Origin: Guillardia theta CCMP2712
Taxonomy: Eukaryota; Protista; Cryptophyta
Assembly: GCF_000315625.1 (NCBI RefSeq)
Contig: NW_005434651.1
Coordinates: 58,195 to 91,029 of the forward strand
Direction: 5' to 3'
Length of the DNA stretch: 32,835 bases
Positions 144 through 22,380 of the stretch are shown here, piece by piece. The first letter of the stretch is position 1; each line of letters opens with the position of its first letter. Both the position numbers and the translations under genes were made by a program. The notes beneath the pieces are model-generated. The model did not search any database and had not been told where the DNA came from. It saw only the letters and a list, made by a program, of their open reading frames with translations.

Positions 144-3100
144 CCCAATACCATGATGCAGACAAGATTTCTTCCTCCTCAGGTTCCTACCCCTACCCCT
201 ACACCTTCCCCTTCCCTTTCCCTTCCTCTGCCCCTGCCCCTTCCCCTGCCCCTTCCCTTTCTCCTTCTTCTGCCCCTGCCCCTGCTCTTGTACCTGCTTT
301 TGCTGAGAGAGCTCATCATTAATTTCCTGGATGGAACTGAAAAGTCCGATCTTACACGTGTACATAATGATACAATAGTGTTGATACAATTTCAATCTTT
401 AAATCCGATTACAAACTCTTACACTCCCTGCCTCTCTCCCTCTACTCCTCCCGTCTCCTCTGTCTTCCTTCCCCTCCCGTCTCTTCCTTCCTCCTCTCTT
501 TCCCCTCCCGTCTCTTCCTCCCGCACGCATCCTCCACTCTCTGCGCATTTCACACGTCTTGCCCCATCCTAGCCTGCATCGACGCCAGCAGCGCAAGTGA
601 AGGGTTCGTCGACGAGCAAACAGTGCGCTGAGCTCTAGATCGCAGCTTCGCTCGGTCTCCTATCCTCTCCACTCCCACCTCCTTCAGCTCCTGCTCGTTC
701 ATCGCCGCCAGCGCCTCGACATCGATCTTCTCTTCCTCAAACTTGGGCAGCAGCTCCTCCAGCCCGAGCTCCTTCAGCCAGGACTGGATCTTCTTCCTCG
801 ACGCCTCCTCCTCCCGTGCGCGCGATCCACCCACGGGCTGGTATGGCTCGTTATGCATCATCGAGAAGAGGAAGTTGTTAGCGATCTTCCGCTGCTTCCT
901 CATCCTCTTCTCTTCCAGGTTGCAACTCTCGTCAAGGTCATGGTTGTGCTCAGGCATGACGCGCAGAACGACCCAACCGGCGACCTCTCCCTCCACCTCG
1001 CTCACGTACTCGCACACCATCTCCCACTTGCAACAAGGCTTGTCGTACGCATGCCCCATCCCGTGCGTGCAGATATACTTCTTCTGCGTCCCCTTGAACC
1101 CTGTTGCCTTCCTCCTCGTCTCCCAGCGCGCCGGCCAGCAGCCGGGGTTGCCGTCAGGCTTCTCCTTGTCTCCCACGAACTGCTCCAGCTCGTCCATCTG
1201 CCAGCTCCTCTTCGCTTCCGGCGGTGACATGGTTGTGTTCCTCATCGACTTACCCGCCCTCAGGTCCGAGCGATGGTCAGCTTGCCGCAGCCTTGAGCCT
1301 GCATGGTCTCTGCTCTTGCTCCCTCCCTTCCCGTTGGACTTCTTCGTTCGCTTCTTCTGCTTCTTCTTGGAGGATCTTCATGACGAGTCTCCTCTGCCCC
1401 ACCGTCGGCATGAGGCACGGAGCAGCGATCGCGGTTGTTTTTCTCCTGCTCTTCTGCGATATGGTCCAGCATATCAGCGCTGGAGTCTGAGAGAACTTCT
1501 CGGTTGCCAGTGAAGCCATCGTCATGATCGTCTTCATGAATCACCGCTGCCATGTTCGCTCCTGTCTCCGTCATCTCTCAGTGCCTCCACCTCAGACCAC
1601 TGCTGGTTGTCGGCATGAGGATCTTGAACTGCCCTCAATTGGGGAGAGGGAATGTTTTTAGTCAAACTGGGCTTTGAAGCGAGACAGTTAAATACTGATA
1701 TCCAATCGTTCATAGTGGTTTCCAACTGCCCTTGTGCTGAGAGGAGTTCGTACTAGATTTTCGGCCTAGACCCTTCAGTTTCAAATTTCCCCTGTCCTGT
1801 TTCAATCCTCCCCCTGCTGGTTTCGCCGGCTGAACAGTTCCCGGCTGCCAGCCCAATGGCCGGCAGCGGCAGCTGAAAATGCAGACAGCGCCGTCCTGAC
1901 GCGACGACACCCTCTGTTGTCCACTACGTGTGATCCTCCCCCTCCCTCTTCTCCCCTGTCGTGTACTCCCTTACTAGAAACGAAGCCTGTCGAACCCTCT
2001 TCTGCCAACTTCGCCTATCCCCATCTTTCCATACCTCAACTCAGACACGTATCTTCTCTCCCATTGGACCTTCGAGTACTCTTATCCCCCTCCTCGTCTC
2101 GAGTCCTTATCTTCAGATCTCAACGAGTTGCATCCAGCCATCACCATGGCAGAGTGTGTACTGGAGATGGTGCAATCTATTCTCGTTAGCATGTGGAATG
2201 AAGCACGTATGGTGATGACCAATCAGGAGCAGCTGCAGAGCCTGGCTTCGGATGTGAAGGATGTCATGAGCCCGCTCCTCGAGCTTTTGCGTCGAAGCCT
2301 TCGCATAGATCAAGAGCAGCAGGTAGGCTTCGCCCTCAACCGTGTCTACTTCACCCTGTCGTCGGTGCTCGCATTCATCAAGATGAAGGCGGGGGGTCGA
2401 TCAGAGTCGTCTGTGACGCTGGAGGGCAAACCAGATGCCGAGCTTGGCGGAAAGCGAGCGGAGATGTACTTCGCGGTAGAAGCCTTGATGCAGGCCCTGC
2501 AGGGCGAAGGCGGCACGGCCATGAGCGAAGCAGGGGACGGGAAGCAAGACGAGGTGGTAACCAGCAAGCCAGCATACAGGAGGATGAAGGAGGCAGCCGA
2601 GCAGCTGGCAGCTGAAGCCGACATCTTCTCTTCCTCAGAGGCTGAGGAGAGCGACGGGACGCGCCATCCATGGTGTCTGAATCCCTTGGAGCTGCAGGTT
2701 GAGCGAAACAGTCGTGGCAAACCAAAGCATGTGCTGGGGTCCGGAGGGTTTGCGGTCGTGTACCGGGCCTCGTATCAAGGCACGGAGGTTGCGGTCAAGG
2801 AGCCTCATAATCCTCGCGATCTTGAAGGCAGCAAGCTGATGCGGAAAGCATTCTTCAGAGAGGCCAACAACCTCTTCAGAATACATCATCGCAACGTGAT
2901 AGAGCTGGTCGGAGCCATGGTCGTGGACGAGGAAGGGAACCCTTGCTTCCTGCTGGTCACCGAGCTACTGCGGCGACCCCTCACCGAGTACATCGAGGAG
3001 ACGATGAAGCCAGCGAGTGAGAGCGAGCGAAGAGCGCGGGGCCACGTGGTGATGCTTGGACTGGCGGAGGGTCTGGCGTACCTGCACTCTATGCGCATCA

Positions 3101-3621
3101 TCCATAGGGACATCAAGCCCCAGAACATCATGCTTGACGACAAGGACATCCCAAAACTCATCGACTTTGGGCTCTCAAAGGAGAAGGAAGAGATTGCTCA
3201 TTCCAAAGGAAGCACTAGGCTTGCAGGAACAATGAGCTGGATGTCGCCAGAGAAGCGACGAAGCAAGCCTACGTCCACCGCATCTGACGTGTACGCCCTC
3301 GGGCTGGTGATGATGAATGTGATGACGCTTGAGACGCCGCCGGAGAGCCAGGAGGAGCGCGAGAAGCTGCTCAAGGAAACGAGTGACAAGGGAGTGAGCG
3401 GGCAGGTGTCGCTATGGTGCATACACGAGGACCCGTCGAGGAGGCCGACGGCGGCTACTGTTGCAATGAGCTTGACGATGGACCGAGATCTATGCGGGGG
3501 AGGGGAAGTGCTGACAGGTGAGTCGAAGGTGTAAATAAGGAAGGATTGTTTTGTAAGAGACTTGTATAGGAGGCGATCGGCAAGTATCAGATACCACCGA
3601 TGACGGAGAAACTATTGTTCG
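144..3621 (+). repeat. Segmental direct duplication, copy A (~3.45 kb; partner at 13637-17087)
   Basis: Sequence from cccaatacc(a/c)gatgcagacaagatttc through the SAM gene, the intergenic region, kinase exon 1 and the intron is near-identical to 13637-17087. Similarity collapses at the start of the WD40 array. Confidence 0.93.
550..1574 (-). CDS. FAR1/MULE-like (WRKY-GCM1 fold) Zn-finger + C-terminal SAM domain protein, copy A (exon structure uncertain)
   Basis: ORF 550-1245 contains YICTHG...CCKWEMVCEY...GWVVLRVMPEHNHDL (C..C..W.V...HNH.L pattern of FAR1/AFT-type domains) and IQSWLKELGLEELLPKFEEEKIDVEALAAMNEQELKEVGVERIGDRAKL (classic SAM). The upstream MTETGAN ORF (1260-1574) is out of frame here but in frame in copy B. 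Confidence 0.7.
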
Positions 3622-4771
3622 ATGGCAGGAACGTTGCTCATTTCATGGACATTTTCGTCAGATTTTGATAGTCTCATTGTCAAGGGATGGCAGTAAGGTT
3701 GTAACAGGGCTAGATGACAACACTGCAAGAGTCTGGGAGGCAAGCAGTGGTAGGCAATCTGTTTGCTTTGAAGGACACACGAGAAATGTCAAATGTTGCG
3801 TATGGACTTGTGATGGAGGATTGATTGCATCGGGCTCTGATGACAAAACGGTGAGAGTGTGGGAGGCGAGCAGCGGTAAACAAATCAGCTGCTGTAGAGG
3901 ACACACAGATGGAGTTACTACCGTGGTATGGTCTGGCGATGAAAAGCTTGTTGTAGCTGGATCTTGGGATTCAACTATAAGGGTATGGGATGCGAGGGCT
4001 GGGAGGCAAATCAGCTGCTTGAAGGGGCATACAGATGGTATCTATAGCGTGTCGTTGTCGTGGGACTCGAGGATGATCGCTTCAGGCTCAGATGACCGCA
4101 CCGTGAGGATATGGGATGTGAGCAGTGGCAAGCAGCTGAGATGCTGTAGAGAGCACAATGGCAGCGTCACTTGTGTCTCGTGGTCAGAAGATGGAAGGAT
4201 GATTGCCTCCGGATCAGATGACGGGACTGTGGGGGTGTGGGAGGCGAGCAGTGGTAACTTAATCAGCTGTTGTGAAGGTCATGAGGGTAGTGTAATGATA
4301 GTTGCTTGGTCAAGAGATGGAAGGATGATTGCCTCCGGATCAGATGACGGGACTGTGGGGGTGTGGGAGGCGAGCAGTGGTAACTTAATCAGCTGTTGTG
4401 AAGGTCATGAGGGTAGTGTAATGATAGTTGCTTGGTCAAGAGATGGAAGGATGATTGCCTCCGGATCAGATGACGGGACTGTGAGGGTGTGGGAGGCGAG
4501 CAGTGGGAGGCCTATAAGATCATGCAAGGAGAAAACAGATTTTGTCAACAATGTCTCAGGAGCTGTGAGATTGATTGAGACAACGAGTGGGAAGCTGGGT
4601 TATCAGATTGACCGTTCGGAAGGACCTCGTCCGTTTCCTACTCATATTGCATGGCTGGGAAATGGACAGCTGATCGCTTCGGGCACTGATGATCAAAAAG
4701 TTCGTCTCTGGGAAGGGATGTTTTTTGAATTGAAGGAGATGAGGAGGTCGAAGCGCTTGAAGACGGCATGA
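2146..4771 (+). CDS. MLKL-like helical NTD - protein kinase - WD40 protein, copy 1 (exons 2146-3517, 3570-4771)
   Basis: Kinase motifs GSGGFAVV, VAVK, HRDIKPQN, DFG, WMSPE, SDVYALG. A 52-nt phase-1 intron ACAG|GTGAGT...TGTATAG|GA (3518-3569) joins in frame (GGDRQVSDTTDDGETIVRWQERCSFHGH) to the WD40 ORF 3665-4771, which has about 8 GH..WE/WD repeats. Confidence 0.88.
4189..4506 (+). repeat. 126-bp (one WD40 unit) tandem repeat, about 2.5 copies
   Basis: Units start at 4189, 4315 and 4441 (agatggaaggatgattgcctccggatcagatgacggg...); the first two are identical. Confidence 0.95.
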
Positions 4772-5204: not shown

Positions 5205-7704
5205 TCATGCTCTCATTCTTTTACCCGATTGTAATTGCCCTTTCATCTCCTCTGCATCGCCATCTTCGTTATCACTCCCTGCTCTTCCTCTTCTCCTCTT
5301 TTTTGACAGCCATTCTCTCCAATTGATGCTTACGCGTTTAGGACTCCTGACCCATAGAATGCCTTGCCATATCTTGATTGTCCTGTCCCAGGACCCAGAT
5401 GCAATCACTCTCCCATTCCACGACCATGATACGCATGACACACCACTCGCATGACCTCTCAAATACCAGATTCTCTTGCCTGTGACGACCTCCCATATTC
5501 GCAAGGTTTTGTCCCATGAGCTTGATGCGATCATCCTTGCATCGCCCGACCATGACACACTGGTAACAACGTGTGTATGTCCCTCACAGCAGCTCATCTG
5601 TCTGCCCCCCTGTACCTCCCATATTCTCACAGTATTGTCGTGTGAACCTGATGCAATCATCTTGCTATCTGCAGAAAATGATACGCAGGTGACAGAGTGG
5701 GTGTGACCTTCTAGACAAGTCATCTCGCTTCCACTGCTTGCTTCCCATATTCTAATAGTCCCATCTTCGGATCCTGAAGCAATCATCTTCCCATCTCCCG
5801 ACCATGACACGCTAGTAACTTTGTTATTCGTACCTTGCAGGCGAAGAATTTCTCTCCCATTACTCACCTCCCACACTCTTAAAGTTTCGTCATTTGAACC
5901 CGAGACAACCAATCTCCCATCTGCCGACCATGATACACTTTTGACACAGTCTGTATGTCCCAAAAGACAGCTGATTTGATTTCGACTATTCGCATCCCAT
6001 ATCCTTATTGACCGGTCGTCTGAGCTCGAGGCAATAAATCTTCCATCAGCTGACCAAGAAACACAGTTCACGATGCCCGAGTGACCTCGAAAGCATGCAA
6101 CCTCCTGGTAAGTGTTTGGATCCCATAATCTCACAGTCTCATCAGCTGACCCAGACACTATGAACTTTCCGTCCCATGACCAGCAAACACTGCACACGCT
6201 GCCAATGTCTCCACGCAAACAGCTGTTGTACCTCCATTGAACCATATTGTCATCTTCTTCAGAACCCCTGATTAAACTCCCTCCCCTCCCTACAAAACAA
6301 AAGAATTAGCCCAAGAAATCCAAGCATGTTTTGACCTTTAAGAACCTGACCTCCCCCGCATAGATCTCGGTCCATCGTCAAGCTCATTGCAACAGTAGCC
6401 GCCGTCGGCCTCCTCGACGGGTCCTCGTGTATGCACCATAGCGACACCTGCCCGCTCACTCCCTTGTCACTCGTTTCCTTGAGCAGCTTCTCGCGCTCCT
6501 CCTGGCTCTCCGGCGGCGTCTCAAGCGTCATCACATTCATCATCACCAGCCCGAGGGCGTACACGTCAGATGCGGTTGTTGAGGGCTCGCCTCGTCGCTT
6601 CTCTGGCGACATCCAATCTAGAGTGCCTCCCCCTGCACTGTGCACTGGTGCAACCATGGATTGTTTCTCCTTCGAAAGCCCCAGGTCGATGAGTTTTGGG
6701 ATGTCCTTGTCGTCAAGCATGATGTTCTGGGGCTTGATGTCCCTATGGATGATGCGCATAGAGTGCAGGTACGCCAGACCCTCCGCCAGTCCAAGCATCA
6801 CCACGTGGCCCCGCGCTCTTCGCTCGCTCTCACTCGCTGGCTTCATCGTCTCCTCGATGTACTCGGTGAGGGGTCGCCGCAGTAGCTCGGTGACCAGCAG
6901 GAAGCAAGGGTTCCCTTCCTCGTCCACGACCATGGCTCCGACCAGCTCTATCACGTTGCGATGATGTATTCTGAAGAGGTTGTTGGCCTCTCTGAAGAAT
7001 GCTTTCCGCATCAGCTTGCTGCCTTCAAGATCGCAAGGATTATGAGGCTCCTTGACCGCAACCTCCGTGCCTTGATACGAGGCCCGGTACACGACCGCAA
7101 ACCCTCCGGACCCCAGCACATGCTTTGGTTGGCCACGACTGTTTCGCTCAACCTGCAGCTCCAAGGGATTCAGACACCATGGATGGCGCGTCCCGTCGCT
7201 CTCCTCAGCCTCTGAGGAAGAGAAGATGTCGGCTTCAGCTGCCAGCTGCTCGGCTGCCTCCTTCATCCTCCTGTATGCTGGCTTGCTGGTTACCACCTCG
7301 TCTTGCTTCCCGTCCCCTGCTTCGCTCATGGCCGTGCCGCCTTCGCCCTGCAGGGCCTGCATCAAGGCTTCTACCGCGAAGTACATCTCCGCTCGCTTTC
7401 CGCCAAGCTCGGCATCTAGTTTGCCCTCCAGCGTCACAGACGACTCTGATCGACCCCCCGCCTTCATCTTGATGAATGCGAGCACCGACGACAGGGTGAA
7501 GTAGACACGGTTGAGGGCGAAGCCTACCTGCTGCTCTTGATCTATGCGAAGGCTTCGACGCAAAAGCTCGAGGAGCGGGCTCATGACATCCTTCACATCC
7601 GAAGCCAGGCTCTGCAGCTGCTCCTGATTGGCCATCGCCAAGTGTGCTTCATTCCACATGCTAACGAGAATAGATTGTACCATTCCGTGAACGCTCTCTG
7701 CCAT
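5205..7704 (-). CDS. MLKL-like helical NTD - protein kinase - WD40 protein, copy 2 (exons 7704-6336, 6289-5205)
   Basis: Kinase ORF 6259-7704 (DLG variant). A putative 46-nt intron AAAG|GTCAAA...GCTAAT...TTTGTAG|GG (6335-6290) joins in frame (GRGGSLIRGSEEDDNMVQW) to ORF 5205-6245 with 7 WD40 repeats. The donor site is weaker than in the other copies. Confidence 0.82.
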
Positions 7705-9655
7705 GTTGGGAATCTAGGCAAGGAAAGCAAATCAGATCGAATTAAGAAGGTTTAGGAGTATGGGGGAGTAATGCGGACGGATTTGATTGGGATTTGGGAA
7801 TAGATTGTGAAGATGTCATGACTACATCTTTTTGAAGGCAGCACAGATGAGTCATGTAGAAGGGGATGAGACGCTTTGGCGATGTTGCATGCGAAGGAGA
7901 CGCATTCTAACAAGAGTCAGGTAGTTGCACTGTAGGTGGGCAGGCAGATGGAGAGGACTTGCAGGGATTGACGGTGTGATGCACACCCTCCATATGTGTA
8001 CCCCACCCTACGTTATGTCAATTTGGACCCCTACCCTTCTAGATGATTTCCTACCTACGTTGACCACCCACCCCTGCATCCATCCCCTCTATCCGAAAGG
8101 AACGCATCCTCTTCGGGCGCCCTCCTAGCTTCAACGTCACACTTCTCCATCATCCCCCGATCCCTCCAGACAATTGTTTCCCTTTATGTGCACAACACGA
8201 ACAGAAATCCAACCTTGACATGATTAACCCGCATTACTCCCCCATACTCCTAAACCTTCTTAATTCGATCTGATTTGCTTTCCTTGCCTAGATTCCCAAC
8301 ATGGCAGAGAGCGTTCACGGAATGGTACAATCTATTCTCGTTAGCATGTGGAATGAAGCACACTTGGCGATGGCCAATCAGGAGCAGCTGCAGAGCCTGG
8401 CTTCGGATGTGAAGGATGTCATGAGCCCGCTCCTCGAGCTTTTGCGTCGAAGCCTTCGCATAGATCAAGAGCAGCAGGTAGGCTTCGCCCTCAACCGTGT
8501 CTACTTCACCCTGTCGTCGGTGCTCGCATTCATCAAGATGAAGGCGGGGGGTCGATCAGAGTCGTCTGTGACGCTGGAGGGCAAACTAGATGCCGAGCTT
8601 GGCGGAAAGCGAGCGGAGATGTACTTCGCGGTAGAAGCCTTGATGCAGGCCCTGCAGGGCGAAGGCGGCACGGCCATGAGCGAAGCAGGGGACGGGAAGC
8701 AAGACGAGGTGGTAACCAGCAAGCCAGCATACAGGAGGATGAAGGAGGCAGCCGAGCAGCTGGCAGCTGAAGCCGACATCTTCTCTTCCTCAGAGGCTGA
8801 GGAGAGCGACGGGACGCGCCATCCATGGTGTCTGAATCCCTTGGAGCTGCAGGTTGAGCGAAACAGTCGTGGCCAACCAAAGCATGTGCTGGGGTCCGGA
8901 GGGTTTGCGGTCGTGTACCGGGCCTCGTATCAAGGCACGGAGGTTGCGGTCAAGGAGCCTCATAATCCTTGCGATCTTGAAGGCAGCAAGCTGATGCGGA
9001 AAGCATTCTTCAGAGAGGCCAACAACCTCTTCAGAATACATCATCGCAACGTGATAGAGCTGGTCGGAGCCATGGTCGTGGACGAGGAAGGGAACCCTTG
9101 CTTCCTGCTGGTCACCGAGCTACTGCGGCGACCCCTCACCGAGTACATCGAGGAGACGATGAAGCCAGCGAGTGAGAGCGAGCGAAGAGCGCGGGGCCAC
9201 GTGGTGATGCTTGGACTGGCGGAGGGTCTGGCGTACCTGCACTCTATGCGCATCATCCATAGGGACATCAAGCCCCAGAACATCATGCTTGACGACAAGG
9301 ACATCCCAAAACTCATCGACCTGGGGCTTTCGAAGGAGAAACAATCCATGGTTGCACCAGTGCACAGTGCAGGGGGAGGCACTCTAGATTGGATGTCGCC
9401 AGAGAAGCGACGAGGCGAGCCCTCAACAACCGCATCTGACGTGTACGCCCTCGGGCTGGTGATGATGAATGTGATGACGCTTGAGACGCCGCCGGAGAGC
9501 CAGGAGGAGCGCGAGAAGCTGCTCAAGGAAACGAGTGACAAGGGAGTGAGCGGGCAGGTGTCGCTATGGTGCATACACGAGGACCCGTCGAGGAGGCCGA
9601 CGGCGGCTACTGTTGCGATGAGCTTGACGATGGACCGAGATCTATGCGGGGGAGG
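6350..9655. repeat. Large inverted repeat: arms ~6350-7776 and 8229-9655 (~1.43 kb), 452-bp spacer
   Basis: Kinase exons of copies 2 and 3 plus about 70 bp of upstream sequence are reverse complements (7704 pairs with 8301, 7776 with 8229). The proteins are identical up to DLCGGG. Confidence 0.95.
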
Positions 9656-10710
9656 GGAAGTGCTGACCGGTGAGTCAATCAATGTCTTTGTTATTTTGAT
9701 GATGGTTTTGCTTGGGGGATCTTATTTAACCATTTCTAACAGGGGATTGTTTTGAGGGAAACAACAACCGATGTGATGATGATGAGATGCTTTTGTTGTG
9801 GAAAGAGGCGAAAACTCTTTCGGGTCATACCGATGTTGTCAACTGCGTTTCATGGTCGGGAGACGGGAAAATGATTGCTTCAGTGTCAGGGGATAAGACC
9901 TTGAGAATATGGGAGGCGAGCAGCGGCAGGCAAATCAGTTGTCTTGAAGGACATACAGACATAATCTGGTTCGTTTCTTGGTCAGGCCAAGGGGGACTGA
10001 TTGCGACTGCATCATCTGACAAGACTGTGAGAATATGGAACCCAGTTTCTGGTAAGGAACTTCGAATTCTCAGACACAAGAATCGAGTTAACTGTGTCTC
10101 GTGGTCTGGAGATGGAAAAAAGATTGTCTCCGGATGTTCAGACCACAAAGTGAGGATATGGGACGCAACTTTTGGATATGAAATCAAATGTTGTAAAGGG
10201 CATAGCCAGTTTGTCAGGTGCGTGGTATTTTCAAGCGATGGAAAGTTGGTCGTGTCGGGATCGATGGACAAGACCTTGAGGATGTGGGATGCGGTCACTG
10301 GCAAGGAAGTTCGATGCTGGAAGGCACACTCAAAGGGTATTAATAGTTTGTCGTTCTCACCAGATGGGAGCAAGATTGCATCCACTTCGTCAGACAACAC
10401 AGTGAAGGTCTGGGATGTTAGCAATGGAGATCAAGTACATTGTTTCGCAGGACACGAGGAAAAGGTTTTGTCAGCTTGTTGGTCAGCAGACGGTGGACTG
10501 ATCGCTTCGGGTTCGTCCGACAAGACGGTACGCTTGTGGGATGCGAGCAATGGACGAGCAATCCGATACCTGAAAGGACATACTTGGACTGTAGGAAGCG
10601 TTTCCTTCTCACAGAACAACATGATGATTGCCTCCGGTTCATCCGACAAGACCGTGAGAATTTGGGAAGCGACAGTATGGGTGCAGAGCAAACGCATGCG
10701 ACTCAAGTGA
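8301..10710 (+). CDS. MLKL-like helical NTD - protein kinase - WD40 protein, copy 3 (exons 8301-9669, 9743-10710)
   Basis: Kinase ORF (DLG variant). A 73-nt phase-1 intron ACCG|GTGAGT...TTCTAACAG|GG (9670-9742) joins in frame (GDCFEGNNNRCDDDEMLLLW) to ORF 9787-10710 with 7 WD40 repeats. Confidence 0.88.
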
Positions 10711-13636: not shown

Positions 13637-16600
13637 CCCAATACCACGATGCAGACAAGATTTCTTCCTCCTCAGGTTCCTACCCCTACCCCTACCCCTA
13701 CCCCTACCCCTTCCCTTTCCCCTTCTTCTGCCCCTGCCCCTGCCCCTGCCCCTGCTCTTGTACCTGCTTTTGCTGAGAGAGCTCATCATTAATTTCCTGG
13801 ATGGAACTGAAAAGTCCGATCTTACACGTGTACATAATGATACAATAGTGTTGATATAATTTCAATCTTTAAATCCGATTACAAACTCTTACACTCCCTT
13901 CCTCTCTCCCTCTACCCCTCCCGTCTCCTCTGTCTTCCTTCCCCTCCCGTCCCTTCCTTCCTCCTCTCTTTCCCCTCCCGTCTCTTCCTCCCGCACGCAT
14001 CCTCCACTCTCTGCGCATTTCACACGTCTTGCCCCATCCTAGCCTGCATCGACGCCAGCAGCGCAAGTGAAGGGTTCGTCGACGAGCAAACAGTGCGCTG
14101 AGCTCTAGATCGCAGCTTCGCTCGGTCTCCTATCCTCTCCACTCCCACCTCCTTCAGCTCCTGCTCGTTCATCGCCGCCAGTGCCTCGACATCGATCTTC
14201 TCTTCCTCAAACTTGGGCAGCAGCCTCCAGCCCGAGCTCCTTCAGCCAGGACTGGATCTTCTTCCTCGACGCCTCCTCCTCCCGTGCGCGCGATCCACCC
14301 ACGGGCTGGTATGGCTCGTTATGCATCATCGAGAAGAGGAAGTTGTTAGCGATCTTCCGCTGCTTCCTCATCCTCTTCTCTTCCAGGTTGCAACTCTCGT
14401 CAAGGTCATGGTTGTGCTCAGGCATGACGCGCAGAACGACCCAACCGGCGACCTCTCCCTCCACCTCGCTCACGTACTCGCACACCATCTCCCACTTGCA
14501 ACAAGGCTTGTCGTACGCATGCCCCATCCCGTGCGTGCAGATATACTTCTTCTGCGTCCCCTTGAACCCTGTTGCCTTCATCCTCGTCTCGGTCACTCGC
14601 CATGGCCCCAGCGGATAGTCCTTGGGAAGGTTTGCTGGGATGTCGTACGTGCGGCAAAGCTGCAGGATCTGCCAGCTCCTCTTCGCTTCCGGCGGTGACA
14701 TGGTTGTGTTCCTCATCGACTTACCCGCCCTCAGGTCCGAGCGATGGTCAGCTTGCCGCAGCCTTGAGCCTGCATGGTCTCTGCTCGCCTCCTGCGGCTG
14801 CTCCTGCACAGCGCCTTTGCCATGATCTGCTCTCCTGGGAGGATCTTCATGACGAGTCTCCTCTGCCCCACCGTCGGCATGAGGCACGGAGCAGCGATCG
14901 CGGTTGTTTTTCTCCTGCTCTTCTGCGATATGGTCCAGCATATCAGCGCTGGAGTCTGAGAGAACTTCTCGGTTGCCAGTGAAGCCATCGTCATGATCGT
15001 CTTCATGAATCACCGCTGCCATGTTCGCTCCTGTCTCCGTCATCTCTCAGTGCCTCCACCTCAGACCACTGCTGGTTGTCGGCATGAGGATCTTGAACTG
15101 CCCTCAATTGGGGAGAGGGAATGTTTTTAGTCAAACTGGGCTTTGAAGCGAGACAGTTAAATACTGATATCCAATCGTTCATAGTGGTTTCCAACTGCCC
15201 TTGTGCTGAGAGGAGTTCGTACTAGATTTTCGGCCTAGACCCTTCAGTTTCAAATTTCCCCTGTCCTGTTTCAATCCTCCCCCTGCTGGTTTCGCCGGCT
15301 GAACAGTTCCCGGCTGCCAGCCCAATGGCCGGCAGCGGCAGCTGAAAATGCAGACAGCGCCGTCCTGACGCGACGACACCCTCTGTTGTCCACTACGTGT
15401 GATCCTCCCCCTCCCTCTTCTCCCCTGTCGTGTACTCCCTTACTAGAAACGAAGCCTGTCGAACCCTCTTCTGCCAACTTCGCCTATCCCCATCTTTCCA
15501 TACCTCAACTCAGACACGTATCTTCTCTCCCATTGGACCTTCGAGTACTCTTATCCCCCTCCTCGTCTCGAGTCCTTATCTTCAGATCTCAACGAGTTGC
15601 ATCCAGCCATCACCATGGCAGAGTGTGTACTGGAGATGGTGCAATCTATTCTCGTTAGCATGTGGAATGAAGCACGTATGGTGATGACCAATCAGGAGCA
15701 GCTGCAGAGCCTGGCTTCGGATGTGAAGGATGTCATGAGCCCGCTCCTCGAGCTTTTGCGTCGAAGCCTTCGCATAGATCAAGAGCAGCAGGTAGGCTTC
15801 GCCCTCAACCGTGTCTACTTCACCCTGTCGTCGGTGCTCGCATTCATCAAGATGAAGGCGGGGGGTCGATCAGAGTCGTCTGTGACGCTGGAGGGCAAAC
15901 TAGATGCCGAGCTTGGCGGAAAGCGAGCGGAGATGTACTTCGCGGTAGAAGCCTTGATGCAGGCCCTGCAGGGCGAAGGCGGCACGGCCATGAGCGAAGC
16001 AGGGGACGGGAAGCAAGACGAGGTGGTAACCAGCAAGCCAGCATACAGGAGGATGAAGGAGGCAGCCGAGCAGCTGGCAGCTGAAGCCGACATCTTCTCT
16101 TCCTCAGAGGCTGAGGAGAGCGACGGGACGCGCCATCCATGGTGTCTGAATCCCTTGGAGCTGCAGGTTGAGCGAAACAGTCGTGGCAAACCAAAGCATG
16201 TGCTGGGGTCCGGAGGGTTTGCGGTCGTGTACCGGGCCTCGTATCAAGGCACGGAGGTTGCGGTCAAGGAGCCTCATAATCCTTGCGATCTTGAAGGCAG
16301 CAAGCTGATGCGGAAAGCATTCTTCAGAGAGGCCAACAACCTCTTCAGAATACATCATCGCAACGTGATAGAGCTGGTCGGAGCCATGGTCGTGGACGAG
16401 GAAGGGAACCCTTGCTTCCTGCTGGTCACCGAGCTACTGCGGCGACCCCTCACCGAGTACATCGAGGAGACGATGAAGCCAGCGAGTGAGAGCGAGCGAA
16501 GAGCGCGGGGCCACGTGGTGATGCTTGGACTGGCGGAGGGTCTGGCGTACCTGCACTCTATGCGCATCATCCATAGGGACATAACTCCCCAGAACATCAT

Positions 16601-17087
16601 GCTTGACGACAAGGACATCCCAAAACTCATCGACCTGGGGCTTTCGAAGGATAGAAAGGTTGCAAATCAGGCTCCCACCACAAAGATTGCAGGTACACTA
16701 GATTGGATGTCGCCGGAGAAGCGACGAGGCGAGCCCTCAACAACCGCATCTGACGTGTACGCCCTCGGGCTGGTGATGATGAATGTGATGACGCTTGAGA
16801 CGCCGCCGAAGAGCCAGGAGGAGCGCGAGAAGCTGCTCAAGGAAACGAGTGACAAGGGAGTGAGCGGGCAGGTGTCGCTATGGTGCATACACGAGGACCC
16901 GTCGAGGAGGCCGACGGCGGCTACTGTTGCAATGAGCTTGACGATGGACCGAGATCTATGCGGGGGGGGGGAAGTGCTGACAGGTGAGTCGAAGGTGTAA
17001 ATAAGGAAGGATTGTTTTGTAAGAGACTTGTATAGGAGGCGATCGGCAAGTATTAGATACCACCGATGACGAAGAAACCATTGTTCA
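13637..17087 (+). repeat. Segmental direct duplication, copy B (partner 144-3621)
   Basis: Near-identical to 144-3621 apart from discrete swapped patches and scattered SNPs/indels. Confidence 0.93.
14020..15043 (-). pseudogene. FAR1-like Zn-finger + SAM gene, copy B, frameshifted in the SAM domain
   Basis: ORF 14207-15043 is continuous through the HNHDL motif. A 2-bp deletion at ~14224 (cagcctccag vs cagctcctccag in copy A) truncates SAM (ELGLEAAAQV*). Confidence 0.68.
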
Positions 17088-18147
17088 ATACAAACTGATC
17101 AGCTGTTCAAGTCAGTATGATGTCAACATCAGTAATGTTTCATTGTCAGGCGATGCGAAGTTTTTTGCTTCGATATTGTCGCAGGGAAATGTTATCTTGG
17201 TATTTGAGGCAATCAGCGGCAGGCAAATCAGTTGTCTTGAAGGACATACAGACAAAGTGAACAGTTCATCATGGTTGTCGTGTGGAAGTAGGATAGTGTC
17301 AGGATCCTTGGACGGGACTGTGAGGGTGTGGGAGGCGAGCAGTGGTAATCAGATTTGTTGCTGTCAGGGAGATTTCACATGGGTTTTGTTTGTTTCGTCT
17401 TCAAGGGACGGGCAAATGATCGCTTCAGGATGCTCAGACGGGACTGTGAGGGTGTGGGAGGCAAGCAGCGGTAATGAAATCAGCTGCTGTCAGGGACACT
17501 CCGGCAGTGTCACTTGTGCTTCATGGTCTCCTGATGGAAAGTTGATTGCATCAGGGTCCTCGGACGGGACTGCAAGGGTGTGGGAGGCGAGCAGCGGTAA
17601 TGAGATCAGCTGCTGTCAGGGACACACAGGAATAATTGAAAGTGTTGCTTGGTTAGGCAGTGGAAAGATGATAGCATCAGAATCCTTTGATGGGACTGTG
17701 CGGGTGTGGGAGGCGAGCAGCGGGAGGCAAATCAGTTGCCTAAACGATGACAACGGATATACGAAGAGCATCGCTTTTGTGCAGAGTTCAGAATTGATAG
17801 TTTTTGGATCCTGGGACGGGACTGTGAGGGTGTGGGAGGCAAGCAGCGGTAATCAGATTTGTTGCTGTCAGGGGCATGAAGGAGCAGTGAATAGTGTCAG
17901 CCTTTCAGAAGACGGGAAGTTGATAGCATCAGGGTCCACGGACGGGACTGTGAGGGTGTGGGAGGCGAGCAGCGGTAATCAGATTTGTTGCTGTCAGGGA
18001 CATGTAGGAGCGGTGAATAGTGTCAGCCTTTCAGAAGACGGGAAGTTGATAGCATCAGGGTCCACGGACGGGACTGTGAGGGTGTGGCAAGAAAGCTCAT
18101 TTGTCCTAAAACCATGTAGAAGACCAAAACGGCTGAAGTTCAGATGA
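15615..18147 (+). CDS. MLKL-like helical NTD - (pseudo)kinase - WD40 protein, copy 4 (exons 15615-16983, 17036-18147)
   Basis: Kinase with HRDITPQN and DLG. A 52-nt intron (16984-17035), identical to that of copy 1, joins in frame (GGDRQVLDTTDDEETIVQY) to ORF 17143-18147 with about 8 WD40 repeats. Confidence 0.87.
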
Positions 18148-18261: not shown

Positions 18262-20447
18262 TCAGTGCCTGGCAGCCCAGGCGAGGTCGAGGGAGATATA
18301 AGGGGGAAGGAAACCTTTGCTGGCCGCCATCAGCTCAAACGCGAGGGCCCCGAAATGGCTGCTGAAAGTCCCGATGAAGTAATCGCAGGAGGAGAGCAGG
18401 AAGAGATCAAGGATGGCCGTCTCCCCCGCTGCCCCCGCGTCGAGCAGGCCGTGCCTGATTCTGTCCTCCACGTACCAGTTCGAAGAGAGCATGGAAACAT
18501 CCAGCTCGCTGCGGATGACATCCACGTCGAGCTTCGAGGAAATCTCCTTGATAGCCTCCTCGTCGTCACTTGCGATGAACACCTGAAGCTGCTTCAGTCT
18601 CTTCCTCGTCTCATCTAGCAAGCTCAACCTGCGTCGCTCCGAACTTGTCGATCATCGTCTGTATGCTCTCCACGAAGCGGGAGGATGGTTGGCAGGGAGT
18701 TCGATACCCCACAGAGGCTTCGCAAGCGTCTCCTCGCCTTATGTGAACCCCTATCACCCTCCCCTTAGCCCCGAACCCGATCCTGTTCTTGAGCATGCGG
18801 AGCTCGGCCTGCCTGCTCGGCCAGAGCTGCAGCAGGTGGAGGAGGACATGCGAGCGATACCAGAAGCTTCCCTGGTGAGGAGGGAGCAGCTCGCTGGGGA
18901 CGAGAATGCCGATGTTAGTGTTGAGGTTTCCCGTCTCCTCCATGGAGAGCCCAGCTCGCTTGATGTGCCCGCGCGTCAGCTGCTTTGCGTGTATCTCCTC
19001 TATGCTCTGAGGGGCGTCAGAGGTAGAAACACAGGAAGGAGCTCAACCTTGAACGAGCTGCAGTTGGTCAGTGGGAGGAAGTAGCACTCGAGGCTAGCTT
19101 GCCCGCAGTCTGCATGCTTCATCCATGGCCAGTCCTCCTGGTGAAGCACTAGGGTCCGCCTGGACATCAACGCTTCTGTGACACCAGCCACGAGGAACTG
19201 TATCATGATCCCGATCCCCTGCAAGGGAACGCGCAGCCGAAAGGCTTCACCGCATGCTGAGGGAAACTGCACTCGCGCGATCTGCATGCTGGGTCAGGAG
19301 AGGAGCTGCTGAGGTTGCGGCTGCTGCACCTGACGGGATAGAGCAGCCGCACCGACAGAGAAGGAGCTTGCGGCCTTGCACGGGTGGCTCGAAGGGTCTG
19401 TAGGAGGAAGGTACCTGGAGGTAGCAATGTCAGCTTGTCAACCACGGCGAGCTCTTGTGCAGACCTTGTTTCCTTCAAGATGTTGTGATAACATGTTTCT
19501 CCAAACCAATCTCTCTCACATTCACACTGTCCCTCCACGCACCTCCCATGACCTGAGCATGTCTGATTCTCCTCCTCCGAGCAGCTTTGAGACTTCTCAA
19601 AACATTTCAACCCAACCTTCGGCCGCGAGCAGGCGCTCTGACCCTGTGGAGCTGCCGGGTCGAATGAGTTGTTAACAAAGAATATTTGAGACGTTGTTTG
19701 TAAAACGTTTCCTTGAACGTCCTTGAGATGAACTACTAGCGTGTGTCTCCCCTCATCAAGATCCAGAGGAATCGCAATCTTCTTCGATCTTCGGTAGTCC
19801 CCGAGCACAACTGAGTCAACCTCAACTACCAGCGAGTACGGTCGTCTTTGAAAGATTGTGTTCCGGGAGTACATCAGGTCCATCGCCTCTTCCAGATCCA
19901 GCTGCATCTCCCTATCCGTGATTCTTGCCTCCACAAATCTCGGCATGTTCCTGCCGAAGGTGAAGTCCGGGGGAGGATGCTGCACAAGGACGGACATGAA
20001 CGACCGCAGCCAATCGTTCCATCGCTCTCCTCCCACCTCCTCCCCATCGAAAACCGCCCCGTCCTCGTTGATTCGCACGAAGAAGTTGAGCTCAGCGACT
20101 GGGCCTTGAAAGACTCCGTTGACGTTGGTCGACACCTTGAGCACGTGCGGCCCTTCCTCCAGCCCGGGTATCCTTGGCGTCAGGTCTGAGCTGATAGGAA
20201 GGTGAATGTGCCGGTCCCAGTCAATCTCAATGTCGATATCGCCCTGTGCTGATTCATCTGCCAACGAGAATGCGAGCTGCACGTCATCAGGATGCTCGAA
20301 GACGAAGTTCGGAGGCGGGAAACTCAGCTCCACCTTGAAGCCAGACTGCATTCTCTCGTCGTCGCTGCTCACTAGCGCACATGTTATCAGTAGACCAGCC
20401 AGGATGCTGAGACTCGTGCTCGGACGGGGCAGCCTCCTGCTCATCAT
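18262..20447 (-). CDS. Secreted/Golgi alpha-1,6-fucosyltransferase-like (GT23/FUT8-like) protein with EGF-like domain, multi-exon
   Basis: N-terminal hydrophobic signal LSILAGLLITCALVSS; EGF-like CSGHGRCVEGQCECERDWFGETC; GT23 motifs VIGVHIRRGDAC, VFIASDD, LDLFLLSSCDYFIGTFSSHFGALAFELM spread over ORFs 19203-20477, 19000-19287, 18611-18943 and 18262-18627. Confidence 0.8.
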
Positions 20448-20626
20448 CGCAGACCATCCAGGAGCTTTAACCTGCACATCTGTGGAGCAGTATCAACAAT
20501 GCGTGAATGCCCGACCAATTCCGTCATATTGACCTTGAGCACTCCTGCTCCCTCCCTCCTGCTAAAGTTCTTCCCTGTCCTTCCCATTACATTCATGTAT
20601 CCTCCTCCCCTCTTCACTAGTTTACT

Positions 20627-20940: not shown

Positions 20941-21051
20941 TTGATAACAATGCTTGGAACAAGCAATGCAGTGAATGGTTTGAGGTGAAACAGAAACAGT
21001 TGTATACCAGCAAGACCTGGATAGACCGTGAGAGCGGTACTGCAACAAGAT

Positions 21052-22380
21052 ATGAGCATAGCGAGGAAGCTCCCGACGGAGAGTATCGACTTCTCATCTC
21101 CATCAAAACCAACCGCAAGCTCGTCCTCTCCTCAGCGGCAATACAACCTGGAGGGAAGAGTGAAGGGGCTGGAGGAAGCAGAACTAGCAGCATGGCTCCC
21201 CTACGCGCACCTGCGGTCACCTCCTTCGGTCGACAAGGTTGCAGCCGAGCAGAGCAAACCCTTGAAGGATGTTGAGGCAGACGGCGGGGAGACAAAGGAA
21301 GAGAAAGCGAGCGGGAAGCACGTGAAACCATGGTTACTGGACACCATGACCAACAGAGAGGGACTGCCTGACCTGCTGCTGGACGACAGCCGTTACATCG
21401 CTGCTCCCAACTGGAAGAGAGCTGAACTCCTGAAAGAGCTTGCGATCCATGGGGAGCGGGGAGACGCCAAGTTGATCGACGTGGGCAAGCACTTCCTCCA
21501 TGACCCGGAGGGCATGGTCCGTGCCGCAGCCCTGCGCCTGCTGGCCAAGGTGACGACTCGAGGAGACAAGTCGGTGGTGCATGACGTGCTGAGGCTGACC
21601 AAAGATGCGGCGAGCAAGGTGAGGATGGAGGCGTGCAACACGATCAGGGAGATAGGGAGCAGGGGAACTCCTGCTTCCAGCATCGCGGTACCTACGGGGA
21701 CAGCGGCAGACGTGAAGCTCTTGAACAGAGACGAAGCCTCGATCAAGGCTCTGATGCCGCTAGTGGATGACGACATGGGATACGTGCGAGTGGCAGCCGT
21801 TGAGGCGCTTGACGTCATCAACAGCGGGTGGCAGAGGTTCGAGTTCAACGAGAACCGACGAGACGATGCGAAGATGCTGTCGCAGCGCCGGCAGCCTCCT
21901 GTTCCCAGCCCTGTCAAAGCTAAAGTGCCAGAGCTCGAGGACGTCCTGCAGCGAAAGTCGTTCCTGCCGGATGTGCAAGCAGGGGCAGCGAAGAAGCTCG
22001 ACTTCGGCTCGAGGAAGGCAGCTGGGCCTGAGCAGGGGGCGGGGAGGAGGGCTGGGAGGTCTACGCTGGCGGGGTACAAGTATTCCTGGTACAACGACGA
22101 GCTGAGGCAGGAGCGGAGCGTGAAGCTGTTCGAGGAGGCGCAGGAGAAGGCAAGCTTGCAGCGCAAACACACGGTGCACGAGGTGACGGAGCCTGGATCG
22201 AGGAGCGTGACGACCGAGTGGATGGGGATCGAGTGGGTGGATCGAACGAAGAGGGAGTACTTCGGGAAGGTGATCCATCCTCTGGGAGCTGGAGTAGACC
22301 CAACGCGCGATGTCGTACCGGCGCCATACAACGCTGGGTACAACGGCTTCACGACGCCGCTGGGGTACAACTACATGTGA
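21052..22380 (+). CDS. HEAT-repeat (PBS-lyase-like HEAT) protein
   Basis: Long ORF with repeats FLHDPEGMVRAAALRLLAKV, LTKDAASKVRMEACNTIREI, LVDDDMGYVRVAAVEAL; start and introns uncertain. Confidence 0.75.
   Translation: MSIARKLPTESIDFSSPSKPTASSSSPQRQYNLEGRVKGLEEAELAAWLPYAHLRSPPSVDKVAAEQSKPLKDVEADGGETKEEKASGKHVKPWLLDTMTNREGLPDLLLDDSRYIAAPNWKRAELLKELAIHGERGDAKLIDVGKHFLHDPEGMVRAAALRLLAKVTTRGDKSVVHDVLRLTKDAASKVRMEACNTIREIGSRGTPASSIAVPTGTAADVKLLNRDEASIKALMPLVDDDMGYVRVAAVEALDVINSGWQRFEFNENRRDDAKMLSQRRQPPVPSPVKAKVPELEDVLQRKSFLPDVQAGAAKKLDFGSRKAAGPEQGAGRRAGRSTLAGYKYSWYNDELRQERSVKLFEEAQEKASLQRKHTVHEVTEPGSRSVTTEWMGIEWVDRTKREYFGKVIHPLGAGVDPTRDVVPAPYNAGYNGFTTPLGYNYM

Follow-up and report, generated by a model that had tools for sequence, protein, structure and literature searches.

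Four paralogous kinase–WD40 genes (c1–c4) are arranged in a tandem cluster within 16 kb of the Guillardia theta DNA analyzed here, a stretch of 32,835 nucleotides to which the term window refers hereafter. Their first exons are nearly identical, except for one short segment that covers the activation segment of the encoded kinase and is found in three clearly different versions. This raises the question of what has kept such a small segment different within exons that are otherwise alike, and in particular of whether the differences are functional, as an earlier note on this DNA had proposed, a by-product of DNA repair, an import from other kinase genes, or an error of the assembly.

Layout and transcription of the kinase–WD40 cluster

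Each gene consists of two exons separated by a short intron (Table 1). Exon 1, of ~1.37 kb, specifies a helical region of ~180 residues and, after it, a protein kinase (Pfam Pkinase, E 2e-41), while the product of exon 2 is identified by domain search as a seven-bladed WD40 propeller. The introns of all four genes are confirmed by GT..AG joints in RNA-derived contigs, and c1–c4 are all transcribed, each of them being spliced to its own WD40 exon. Among the raw RNA reads of run X24, only two could be placed on the analyzed stretch. The sole database gene model for c1 (P0001, 316 aa) begins only at residue 153 and runs on into intron sequence, thus missing both the four-helix bundle and the WD40 exon.

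Table 1. Positions in the window of the exons and introns of the cluster, of the divergent islands and of a nearby group of base changes
Feature	Position	Strand	Content or basis
c1 exon 1	2146..3517	+	Four-helix bundle, brace and protein kinase; nearly identical among the four copies except in the island
c1 intron	3518..3569 (52 nt, GT..AG)	+	Spliced joint in RNA-derived contigs of run X2
c1 exon 2	3570..4771	+	WD40 propeller, strongly diverged among copies
c2 exon 1	6336..7704	-	Spliced RNA-derived contig in X5, continuing into 6289 downward
c2 intron	6290-6335	-	
c2 exon 2	5205-6289	-	WD40
c3 exon 1	8301..9669	+	Spliced RNA-derived contig in X2, continuing into 9743 onward
c3 intron	9670-9742	+	
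c3 exon 2	9743-10710	+	WD40
c4 exon 1	15615..16983	+	Spliced X5 contig with the c4 letter at 3588, continuing into c4-only sequence
c4 intron	16984-17035	+	
c4 exon 2	17036-18147	+	WD40
Island, c1	3166..3276 (111 bases)	+	Boundaries from DNA alignment and clustering of differences
Island, c2	6577..6684	-	DLG...VAPVHSAGGGTLDW...GEPSTT; 100% identical to the c3 island
Island, c3	9321..9428	+	Identical to c2; letters seen as loose ends in X1 contigs
Island, c4	16635..16742	+	Alignment; loop words in runs of several studies
Three base changes within four bases	16583..16586 (c1 equivalent 3114-3117)	+	In c4 only; 49 bases upstream of the island
Island B	1112..1195 (84 bases) vs 14580-14666 (87 bases)	-	Neighboring Zn-finger/SAM gene
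Island C	1316..1368 (53 bases) vs 14787-14837 (51 bases)	-	Neighboring Zn-finger/SAM gene

Identity among the copies extends beyond the exons. Genes c2 and c3 form a head-to-head inverted repeat, the arms of which (6350-7776 and 9655-8229) differ by one mismatch in 1427 bases (99.93% identical). The c1 and c4 copies share a near-identical repeat of 3.4 kb (c1 155-3587), which includes 570 bases of intergenic DNA as well as a divergently oriented neighboring Zn-finger/SAM gene. Within this repeat, a (CCCCT/CCCTT)n microsatellite (window 202-269 and 13694-13739) differs in length between the two copies.

The WD40 exons contain near-identical or identical units of 126 bases (window 4070-4506 and 17206-18096); the tandem duplicate of 42 residues in c1 is exact, and that of c4 differs at one residue. 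The WD40 repeats evolve through duplication or conversion of their units. Two open reading frames located downstream, at 19203-20477 (-) and 21028-22380 (+), give EGF-like and HEAT-repeat matches and are unrelated to the kinase cluster.

The divergent island over the activation segment

Differences between copies were counted within positions 2225-3517 of c1 (1293 bases), and they proved to be strongly clustered. Of 53 differences between c1 and c2, 44 fall in the island (binomial P 2e-38); the corresponding values are 42 of 49 for c1 and c4 (P 8e-38) and 31 of 43 for c2 and c4 (P 5e-24). Outside the island, copies carrying different loops differ at only 7-12 positions over ~1.18 kb. At the protein level, the island corresponds to residues 341-377, from the F or L of the DFG/DLG motif to eight residues past the SPE motif, equivalent to APE, and it therefore spans the whole activation segment and the start of the loop that follows. 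Three loop versions exist (c1; c2/c3; c4) rather than an open-ended series. Translations and DNA alignment agree with the earlier note, which had described a near-identical kinase exon with an activation segment replaced in three alleles; all the peptides and coordinates that it quoted match, save that the c4 island, given as ~16635-16700, extends to 16742.

Several distinct elements of the kinase change within these boundaries. The DFG+1 residue is F in c1 and L in the other copies, the residues within GT..W are MS or LD, and the stretch past the APE-equivalent motif reads SKPTST or GEPSTT, while an S or T that precedes the GT motif by five to six residues is kept in all three loops. In the AlphaFold model of the c1 protein, residues 346-360 (~3181-3225) constitute the sole low-confidence stretch inside the kinase core (pLDDT <50). 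The c4 island is itself a nested mosaic, its 5' 17 bases being 100% and its 3' 45 bases 98% matching to c2/3, which leaves a unique core of ~46 bases. This nested pattern looks like the result of conversion tracts eroding the island from both sides.

A group of base changes specific for c4 lies shortly upstream of the island (Table 1) and converts the catalytic-loop motif HRDIKPQN to HRDITPQN. It could be a multi-nucleotide mutation or else a very small relic, and the replacement may weaken catalysis in the c4 kinase.

Assembly is difficult where repeats of 1.4-3.4 kb lie within 16 kb and are nearly identical, and the island might consequently be an artefact, namely a collapsed or chimeric consensus of diverged paralogs. 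In the best DNA run (X1), which may however be the source of the assembly itself, the c1 loop was recovered without any mismatch in a 171-base contig (3136-3306) with a depth of 95, near the 84-94 seen for the WD40 sequence unique to c1. The shared flanks, on the contrary, appeared as contigs of 993 bases (2173-3165) and 227 bases (3277-3503) with depths of ~250, ~2.6 times that of the loop-specific contig. Moreover, loose ends at 3238 and 3277 carry c2/3 loop letters joined to the same shared flanks. Such a pattern of depths and loose ends is the one expected if copy-specific loops sit between multi-copy flanks that are identical. All sampled words of the c4 loop were additionally found in runs of two other studies, and part of them in a run of a third, and the RNA-derived contigs link the shared end of exon 1 to four different WD40 exons. 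An assembly artefact is therefore considered extremely improbable.

Age of the island and its possible origins

The different parts of these genes appear to be of different ages. Values of pS in the island amount to 0.59 (c1/c2), 0.56 (c1/c4) and 0.37 (c2/c4), with pN of 0.27-0.32, in contrast with a dS of 0.01-0.03 for the kinase domain outside it, whereas the WD40 exons of c1–c4 are saturated (pS 0.69-0.85) and encode propellers with an amino-acid identity of 42-53%. Synonymous differences are found even in the conserved codons of DFGLSK and GT..W (CTC/CTT, TCA/TCG, GGA/GGC/GGT). DNA distances among copies within the island (0.30-0.39) equal that of c1 to L010 and L011 (0.38), two dispersed paralogs with a divergence of ~40-44% from c1 throughout. 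The contrast between the island and the rest of the kinase, together with the saturated WD40 exons, indicates that c1–c4 are most probably old paralogs, whose exon 1 was recently homogenized and in which the island would be an unconverted relic. The proposal of the earlier note that the loop is shielded from homogenizing gene conversion is supported by this mosaic.

Replacement changes are not in excess, the island dN/dS being 0.36 (c1/c2), 0.33 (c1/c4) and 0.68 (c2/c4). An alignment of 18 relatives from outside the cluster, comprising seven dispersed paralogs of this genome and 11 proteins of other organisms, points in the same direction. In it, the 37-residue window of the island exceeds 72% of exon-1 windows in conservation, and its 15-residue core stands at the 32nd percentile overall and, for the kinase domain only, at the 14th. 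Residues 121-180, 281-300 and 401-420 are much more variable in the family, yet they are identical among c1–c4. The loop that the earlier note had called hypervariable is hence not so across the family; the island would correspond to an ordinary, constrained activation segment in three old versions, and it is conspicuous only because the surrounding sequence has been erased. Of 19 family-conserved positions in the island, 16, 15 and 17 are kept in the three loop versions. These numbers, along with a dN/dS below 1, indicate that each version has been maintained, and the idea of a canonical c1 with degenerate versions in the other copies is rejected. Two findings had been named in the earlier note as speaking against its interpretation, collapse of the assembly and a loop no more divergent than elsewhere in the family; the latter is what is observed, while the former is not.

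The best relatives outside this genome are cryptophyte and marine-protist transcripts, as for example those of Proteomonas sulcata. In the search for close relatives suited for a test of concerted evolution, the best outside proteins of the protein database were 35-47% identical, and a metagenome scan for the cluster of a sister species gave identities of at most 46% over a short segment only. The paralog pair L008/L009 (~7% diverged), in which a replicate of the pattern was sought, exhibits no sharp peak in the loop. No description of this cryptophyte kinase–WD40 family was found in the literature.

Some further features of these relatives can be mentioned. The dispersed paralogs L007 (C29), L008 (C112) and L009 (C99) have HGD for HRD and GFE for DFG and look like pseudokinases, being in that respect closer to MLKL. 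In the P. sulcata transcript P0004, a 31-residue activation segment, DFGLSKEWETLTTSRSKTAVVGTPGWMSPEK, occurs twice in exact tandem (residues ~331-392), which could be a real duplication or an artefact of transcriptome assembly. Finally, contigs of X2 and X5 that touch 2851-2875 and 3061-3090 encode AGIIHKDIKS, the catalytic-loop sequence of L010 (C51:307836-309191), so that this dispersed paralog would be expressed if X2 and X5 are RNA, as their spliced joints suggest.

The c1/c4 repeat offers an internal comparison, since it contains two further islands, B and C, in the neighboring Zn-finger/SAM gene (Table 1). Island B is in frame and encodes a different peptide of 28 or 29 residues in each copy. 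The c4-side gene carries a 2-base deletion at 14223 (c1 equivalent 754-755) that breaks the SAM frame, and only the c1-side gene gives a Pfam SAM match. Block-type islands of this repeat are confined to open reading frames, the 570-base intergenic part being devoid of them. Islands B and C show that the pattern is not peculiar to the activation loop and, together with the damage to the c4-side gene, suggest that at least some islands may survive at this locus without obvious selection.

Donors were searched for all three loop DNAs in the whole 87-Mb assembly of 669 contigs, and only the cluster copies matched; the same result was obtained for both versions of islands B and C. A search for local templates on both strands of the window retrieved nothing for the patches beyond chance 9-15-mers. 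The sole visible exchange is internal to the cluster, and it affects the whole island between c2 and c3 and the island edges between c4 and c2/3.

Taken together, these data can be accommodated by a model in which exon 1 of old tandem paralogs would be kept practically identical by interlocus gene conversion, that is, by concerted evolution, with conversion acting from arm to arm in the head-to-head c2/c3 pair. We infer that gene conversion is the homogenizing process. The WD40 exon and the 111-base stretch of the activation segment would have escaped it and gone on gathering differences, and the island would persist mainly because selection removes activation segments that are converted or chimeric. 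Under this model, each paralog would need its own co-adapted set, formed by DFG or DLG, the loop core, the P+1 residues and the post-APE stretch, that would determine how the kinase is switched on or with which partner it docks. The DFG+1 residue, the loop core, and the GT..W and post-APE residues together line the substrate and activation surface and could plausibly behave as a co-adapted module. A peak of divergence is a recognized signature of selection in duplicates under conversion (PMC3924837). Such a reading is suggested here by the mosaic of ages, and the nested c4 island is expected if conversion tracts erode it from the sides. The confinement of block-type islands to open reading frames also favors selection, while a dN/dS below 1, the fact that only three variants of one strain are at hand, the two comparable islands in the neighboring gene and the missing loop peak in L008/L009 all count against it. 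Selection against converted or chimeric segments is accordingly given about an even chance as the force that preserves the island, the confidence being lowered by the presence of islands B and C in a gene that is damaged in c4.

Among the alternatives, a mosaic without function is rather unlikely, yet the likeliest of them. According to it, strong heterology (~40% mismatch and 3-base indels) stops the extension of heteroduplexes or escapes mismatch repair, so that the differences survive with no consequence for the protein. Two more islands of 50-90 bases in a neighboring gene that looks damaged in one copy, the coincidence of tract ends with the edges of heterology and an island dN/dS below 1 all speak in its favor. 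On the contrary, the parts of exon 1 that vary most in the family and are rich in indels are identical in c1–c4, and it is a family-conserved segment that has remained different, which argues against a barrier driven purely by divergence. Heterology is neither an absolute barrier, given that island edges were converted between c4 and c2/3, nor does it account for how the island first escaped while its flanks stayed identical or for the constrained positions being kept in all three versions. An origin by import, in which recent exon-1 duplicates later had their activation segments overwritten by short tracts from diverged kinase paralogs, the donors being now lost, appears improbable. It would fit the 3.4-kb identity of c1 and c4, which resembles a recent segmental duplication in that it includes intergenic DNA, as well as the location of block-type islands in open reading frames only, where paralogous donors could pair, and the island edges that c4 has in common with c2/3. 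Nonetheless, no donor exists elsewhere in the assembly for the loops or for islands B and C, island distances to the nearest dispersed paralogs are 0.38-0.46, and the saturation of the adjoining WD40 exons downstream implies that the genes, taken whole, did not arise by recent duplication. The exchange of the loop as a cassette, also contemplated in the earlier note, is thus not supported.

That the loop was diversified after a recent duplication by local hypermutation, or by strong positive selection on point mutations, is largely refuted and retains only a very small probability. The variable core does coincide with the disordered, surface-exposed part of the activation loop in the predicted model (see above), and the 3-base cluster alters a catalytic-loop residue in c4. 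Synonymous sites of the island are nevertheless as changed as replacement sites, even in codons of conserved motifs, and with so high a synonymous divergence neither process fits alone; in addition, there are only three variants, and the segment is not hypervariable across the family. It is likewise quite doubtful that the activation segment is a second specificity module in an algal family of MLKL-like death-switch receptors, with loops tuned to different upstream activators or baiting different pathogen or virus factors, and with balancing or diversifying selection opposing conversion independently of the WD40 sensor. The second diversified bait module of the earlier note is disfavored by the dN/dS values, by a loop that is not hypervariable in the family and by the occurrence of islands in the neighboring gene as well.

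Returning to concerted evolution with selection against converted segments, the island would in that case point to the residues by which kinases that are otherwise identical differ in function, whereas if neutral it would simply be a by-product of repair across heterology. In either case, ~1.3 kb at a dS of ~0.01 around 111 bases at a pS of ~0.6, with boundaries nested in three lineages, provides a clean case for the interplay of conversion and divergence. Furthermore, its predicted fold makes the family resemble a cell-death switch of MLKL type to which a WD40 sensor has been fused, and innate immunity is essentially unstudied in such cryptophyte-like algae.

Comparison with known systems

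The AlphaFold (AF2) model of the c1 protein (mean pLDDT 82, pTM 0.85) folds the N-terminal 172 residues into a predicted four-helix bundle (helices 2-22, 27-51, 54-82 and 96-119) and two brace helices (132-139 and 142-164) that precede the kinase N-lobe. Full-length MLKL is the first Foldseek match, and the full-length alignment to 4btf spans 466 columns. In a separate, non-Foldseek search against 48,161 chains, the top three matches of the N-domain were the human MLKL N-terminal domain (6ux8_A, Z 11.7), Arabidopsis AtMLKL3 (6KA4, Z 11.2) and mouse MLKL (4btf, Z 10.8), Z values that lie in a range reachable by helical bundles by chance. The Pfam MLKL_N match stays below the gathering score (13.6 bits against a cut-off of 27, E 0.049); weak MLKL_N matches were obtained for five of 17 family members, and RPW8 was matched in one member at 2.7e-6.

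The architecture of c1–c4 is thus predicted to be MLKL-like at the level of the fold, with a four-helix bundle, two brace helices and a kinase fold in the same order as in MLKL and plant MLKLs (4BTF, 6UX8, 6KA4). It differs by the addition of a C-terminal WD40 propeller. Moreover, MLKL is a pseudokinase, while the catalytic motifs of c1 are complete, namely VAVK (K218), HRDIKPQN (HRD, K324, N327) and DFG; c2–c4 have DLG, and c4 additionally HRDIT (T324 in place of K324). In keeping its catalytic motifs c1 resembles the wheat Pm13 MLKL-K, to which it is closer than to MLKL (PMC11297308). In MLKL, phosphorylation of the activation loop by an upstream kinase releases the killer domain; in c1–c4, all three loops keep an S or T ahead of the GT motif (see above). 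Of the MLKL analogy drawn in the earlier note, the architecture stands, while nothing was found to support the loop as a trigger or as a target of effectors.

Plant decoy or guarded kinases (PBS1, PBLs, ZED1/ZRKs) have activation loops that are modified by pathogen effectors. They share with the present genes the idea of an activation loop as a variable, recognized element, and the resemblance is conceptual only: no NLR guard, effector, or cleavage or modification motif is evident, and the island dN/dS is below 1. In particular, a search of the encoded proteins and of the remaining large open reading frames in the window detected neither NB-ARC nor NACHT. Fungal HET-E/NWD-type receptors, with their internally homogenized, variable WD40 repeats, resemble the cluster in having tandem paralogs, near-identical 42-residue WD40 units, an N-terminal domain of cell-death type and an evolution driven by conversion. 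They differ in that a kinase takes here the place of the NACHT/NB-ARC NTPase and that the variable element is in the kinase instead of in the repeats. As there is no NLR-type NTPase, membership fits neither in the decoy kinases nor in the fungal NWD receptors.

The closest parallels are the peaks of divergence described under interlocus gene conversion for exon 5 of the human red/green opsins, together with the model of Teshima and Innan (PMC3924837), and for GOT1 of Tigriopus (PMC3728101). Unlike them, the cluster is known here from the sequence of one strain, and similar islands are present in a neighboring gene; its island is also far more diverged, with synonymous sites near saturation, and is shared by three lineages in which it is nested in size. 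As in them, the paralogs are near-identical but for a short, sharply bounded divergent segment that is functionally critical, at the edges of which the tracts end. The island in this sense adds an unusually clean case to a known pattern.
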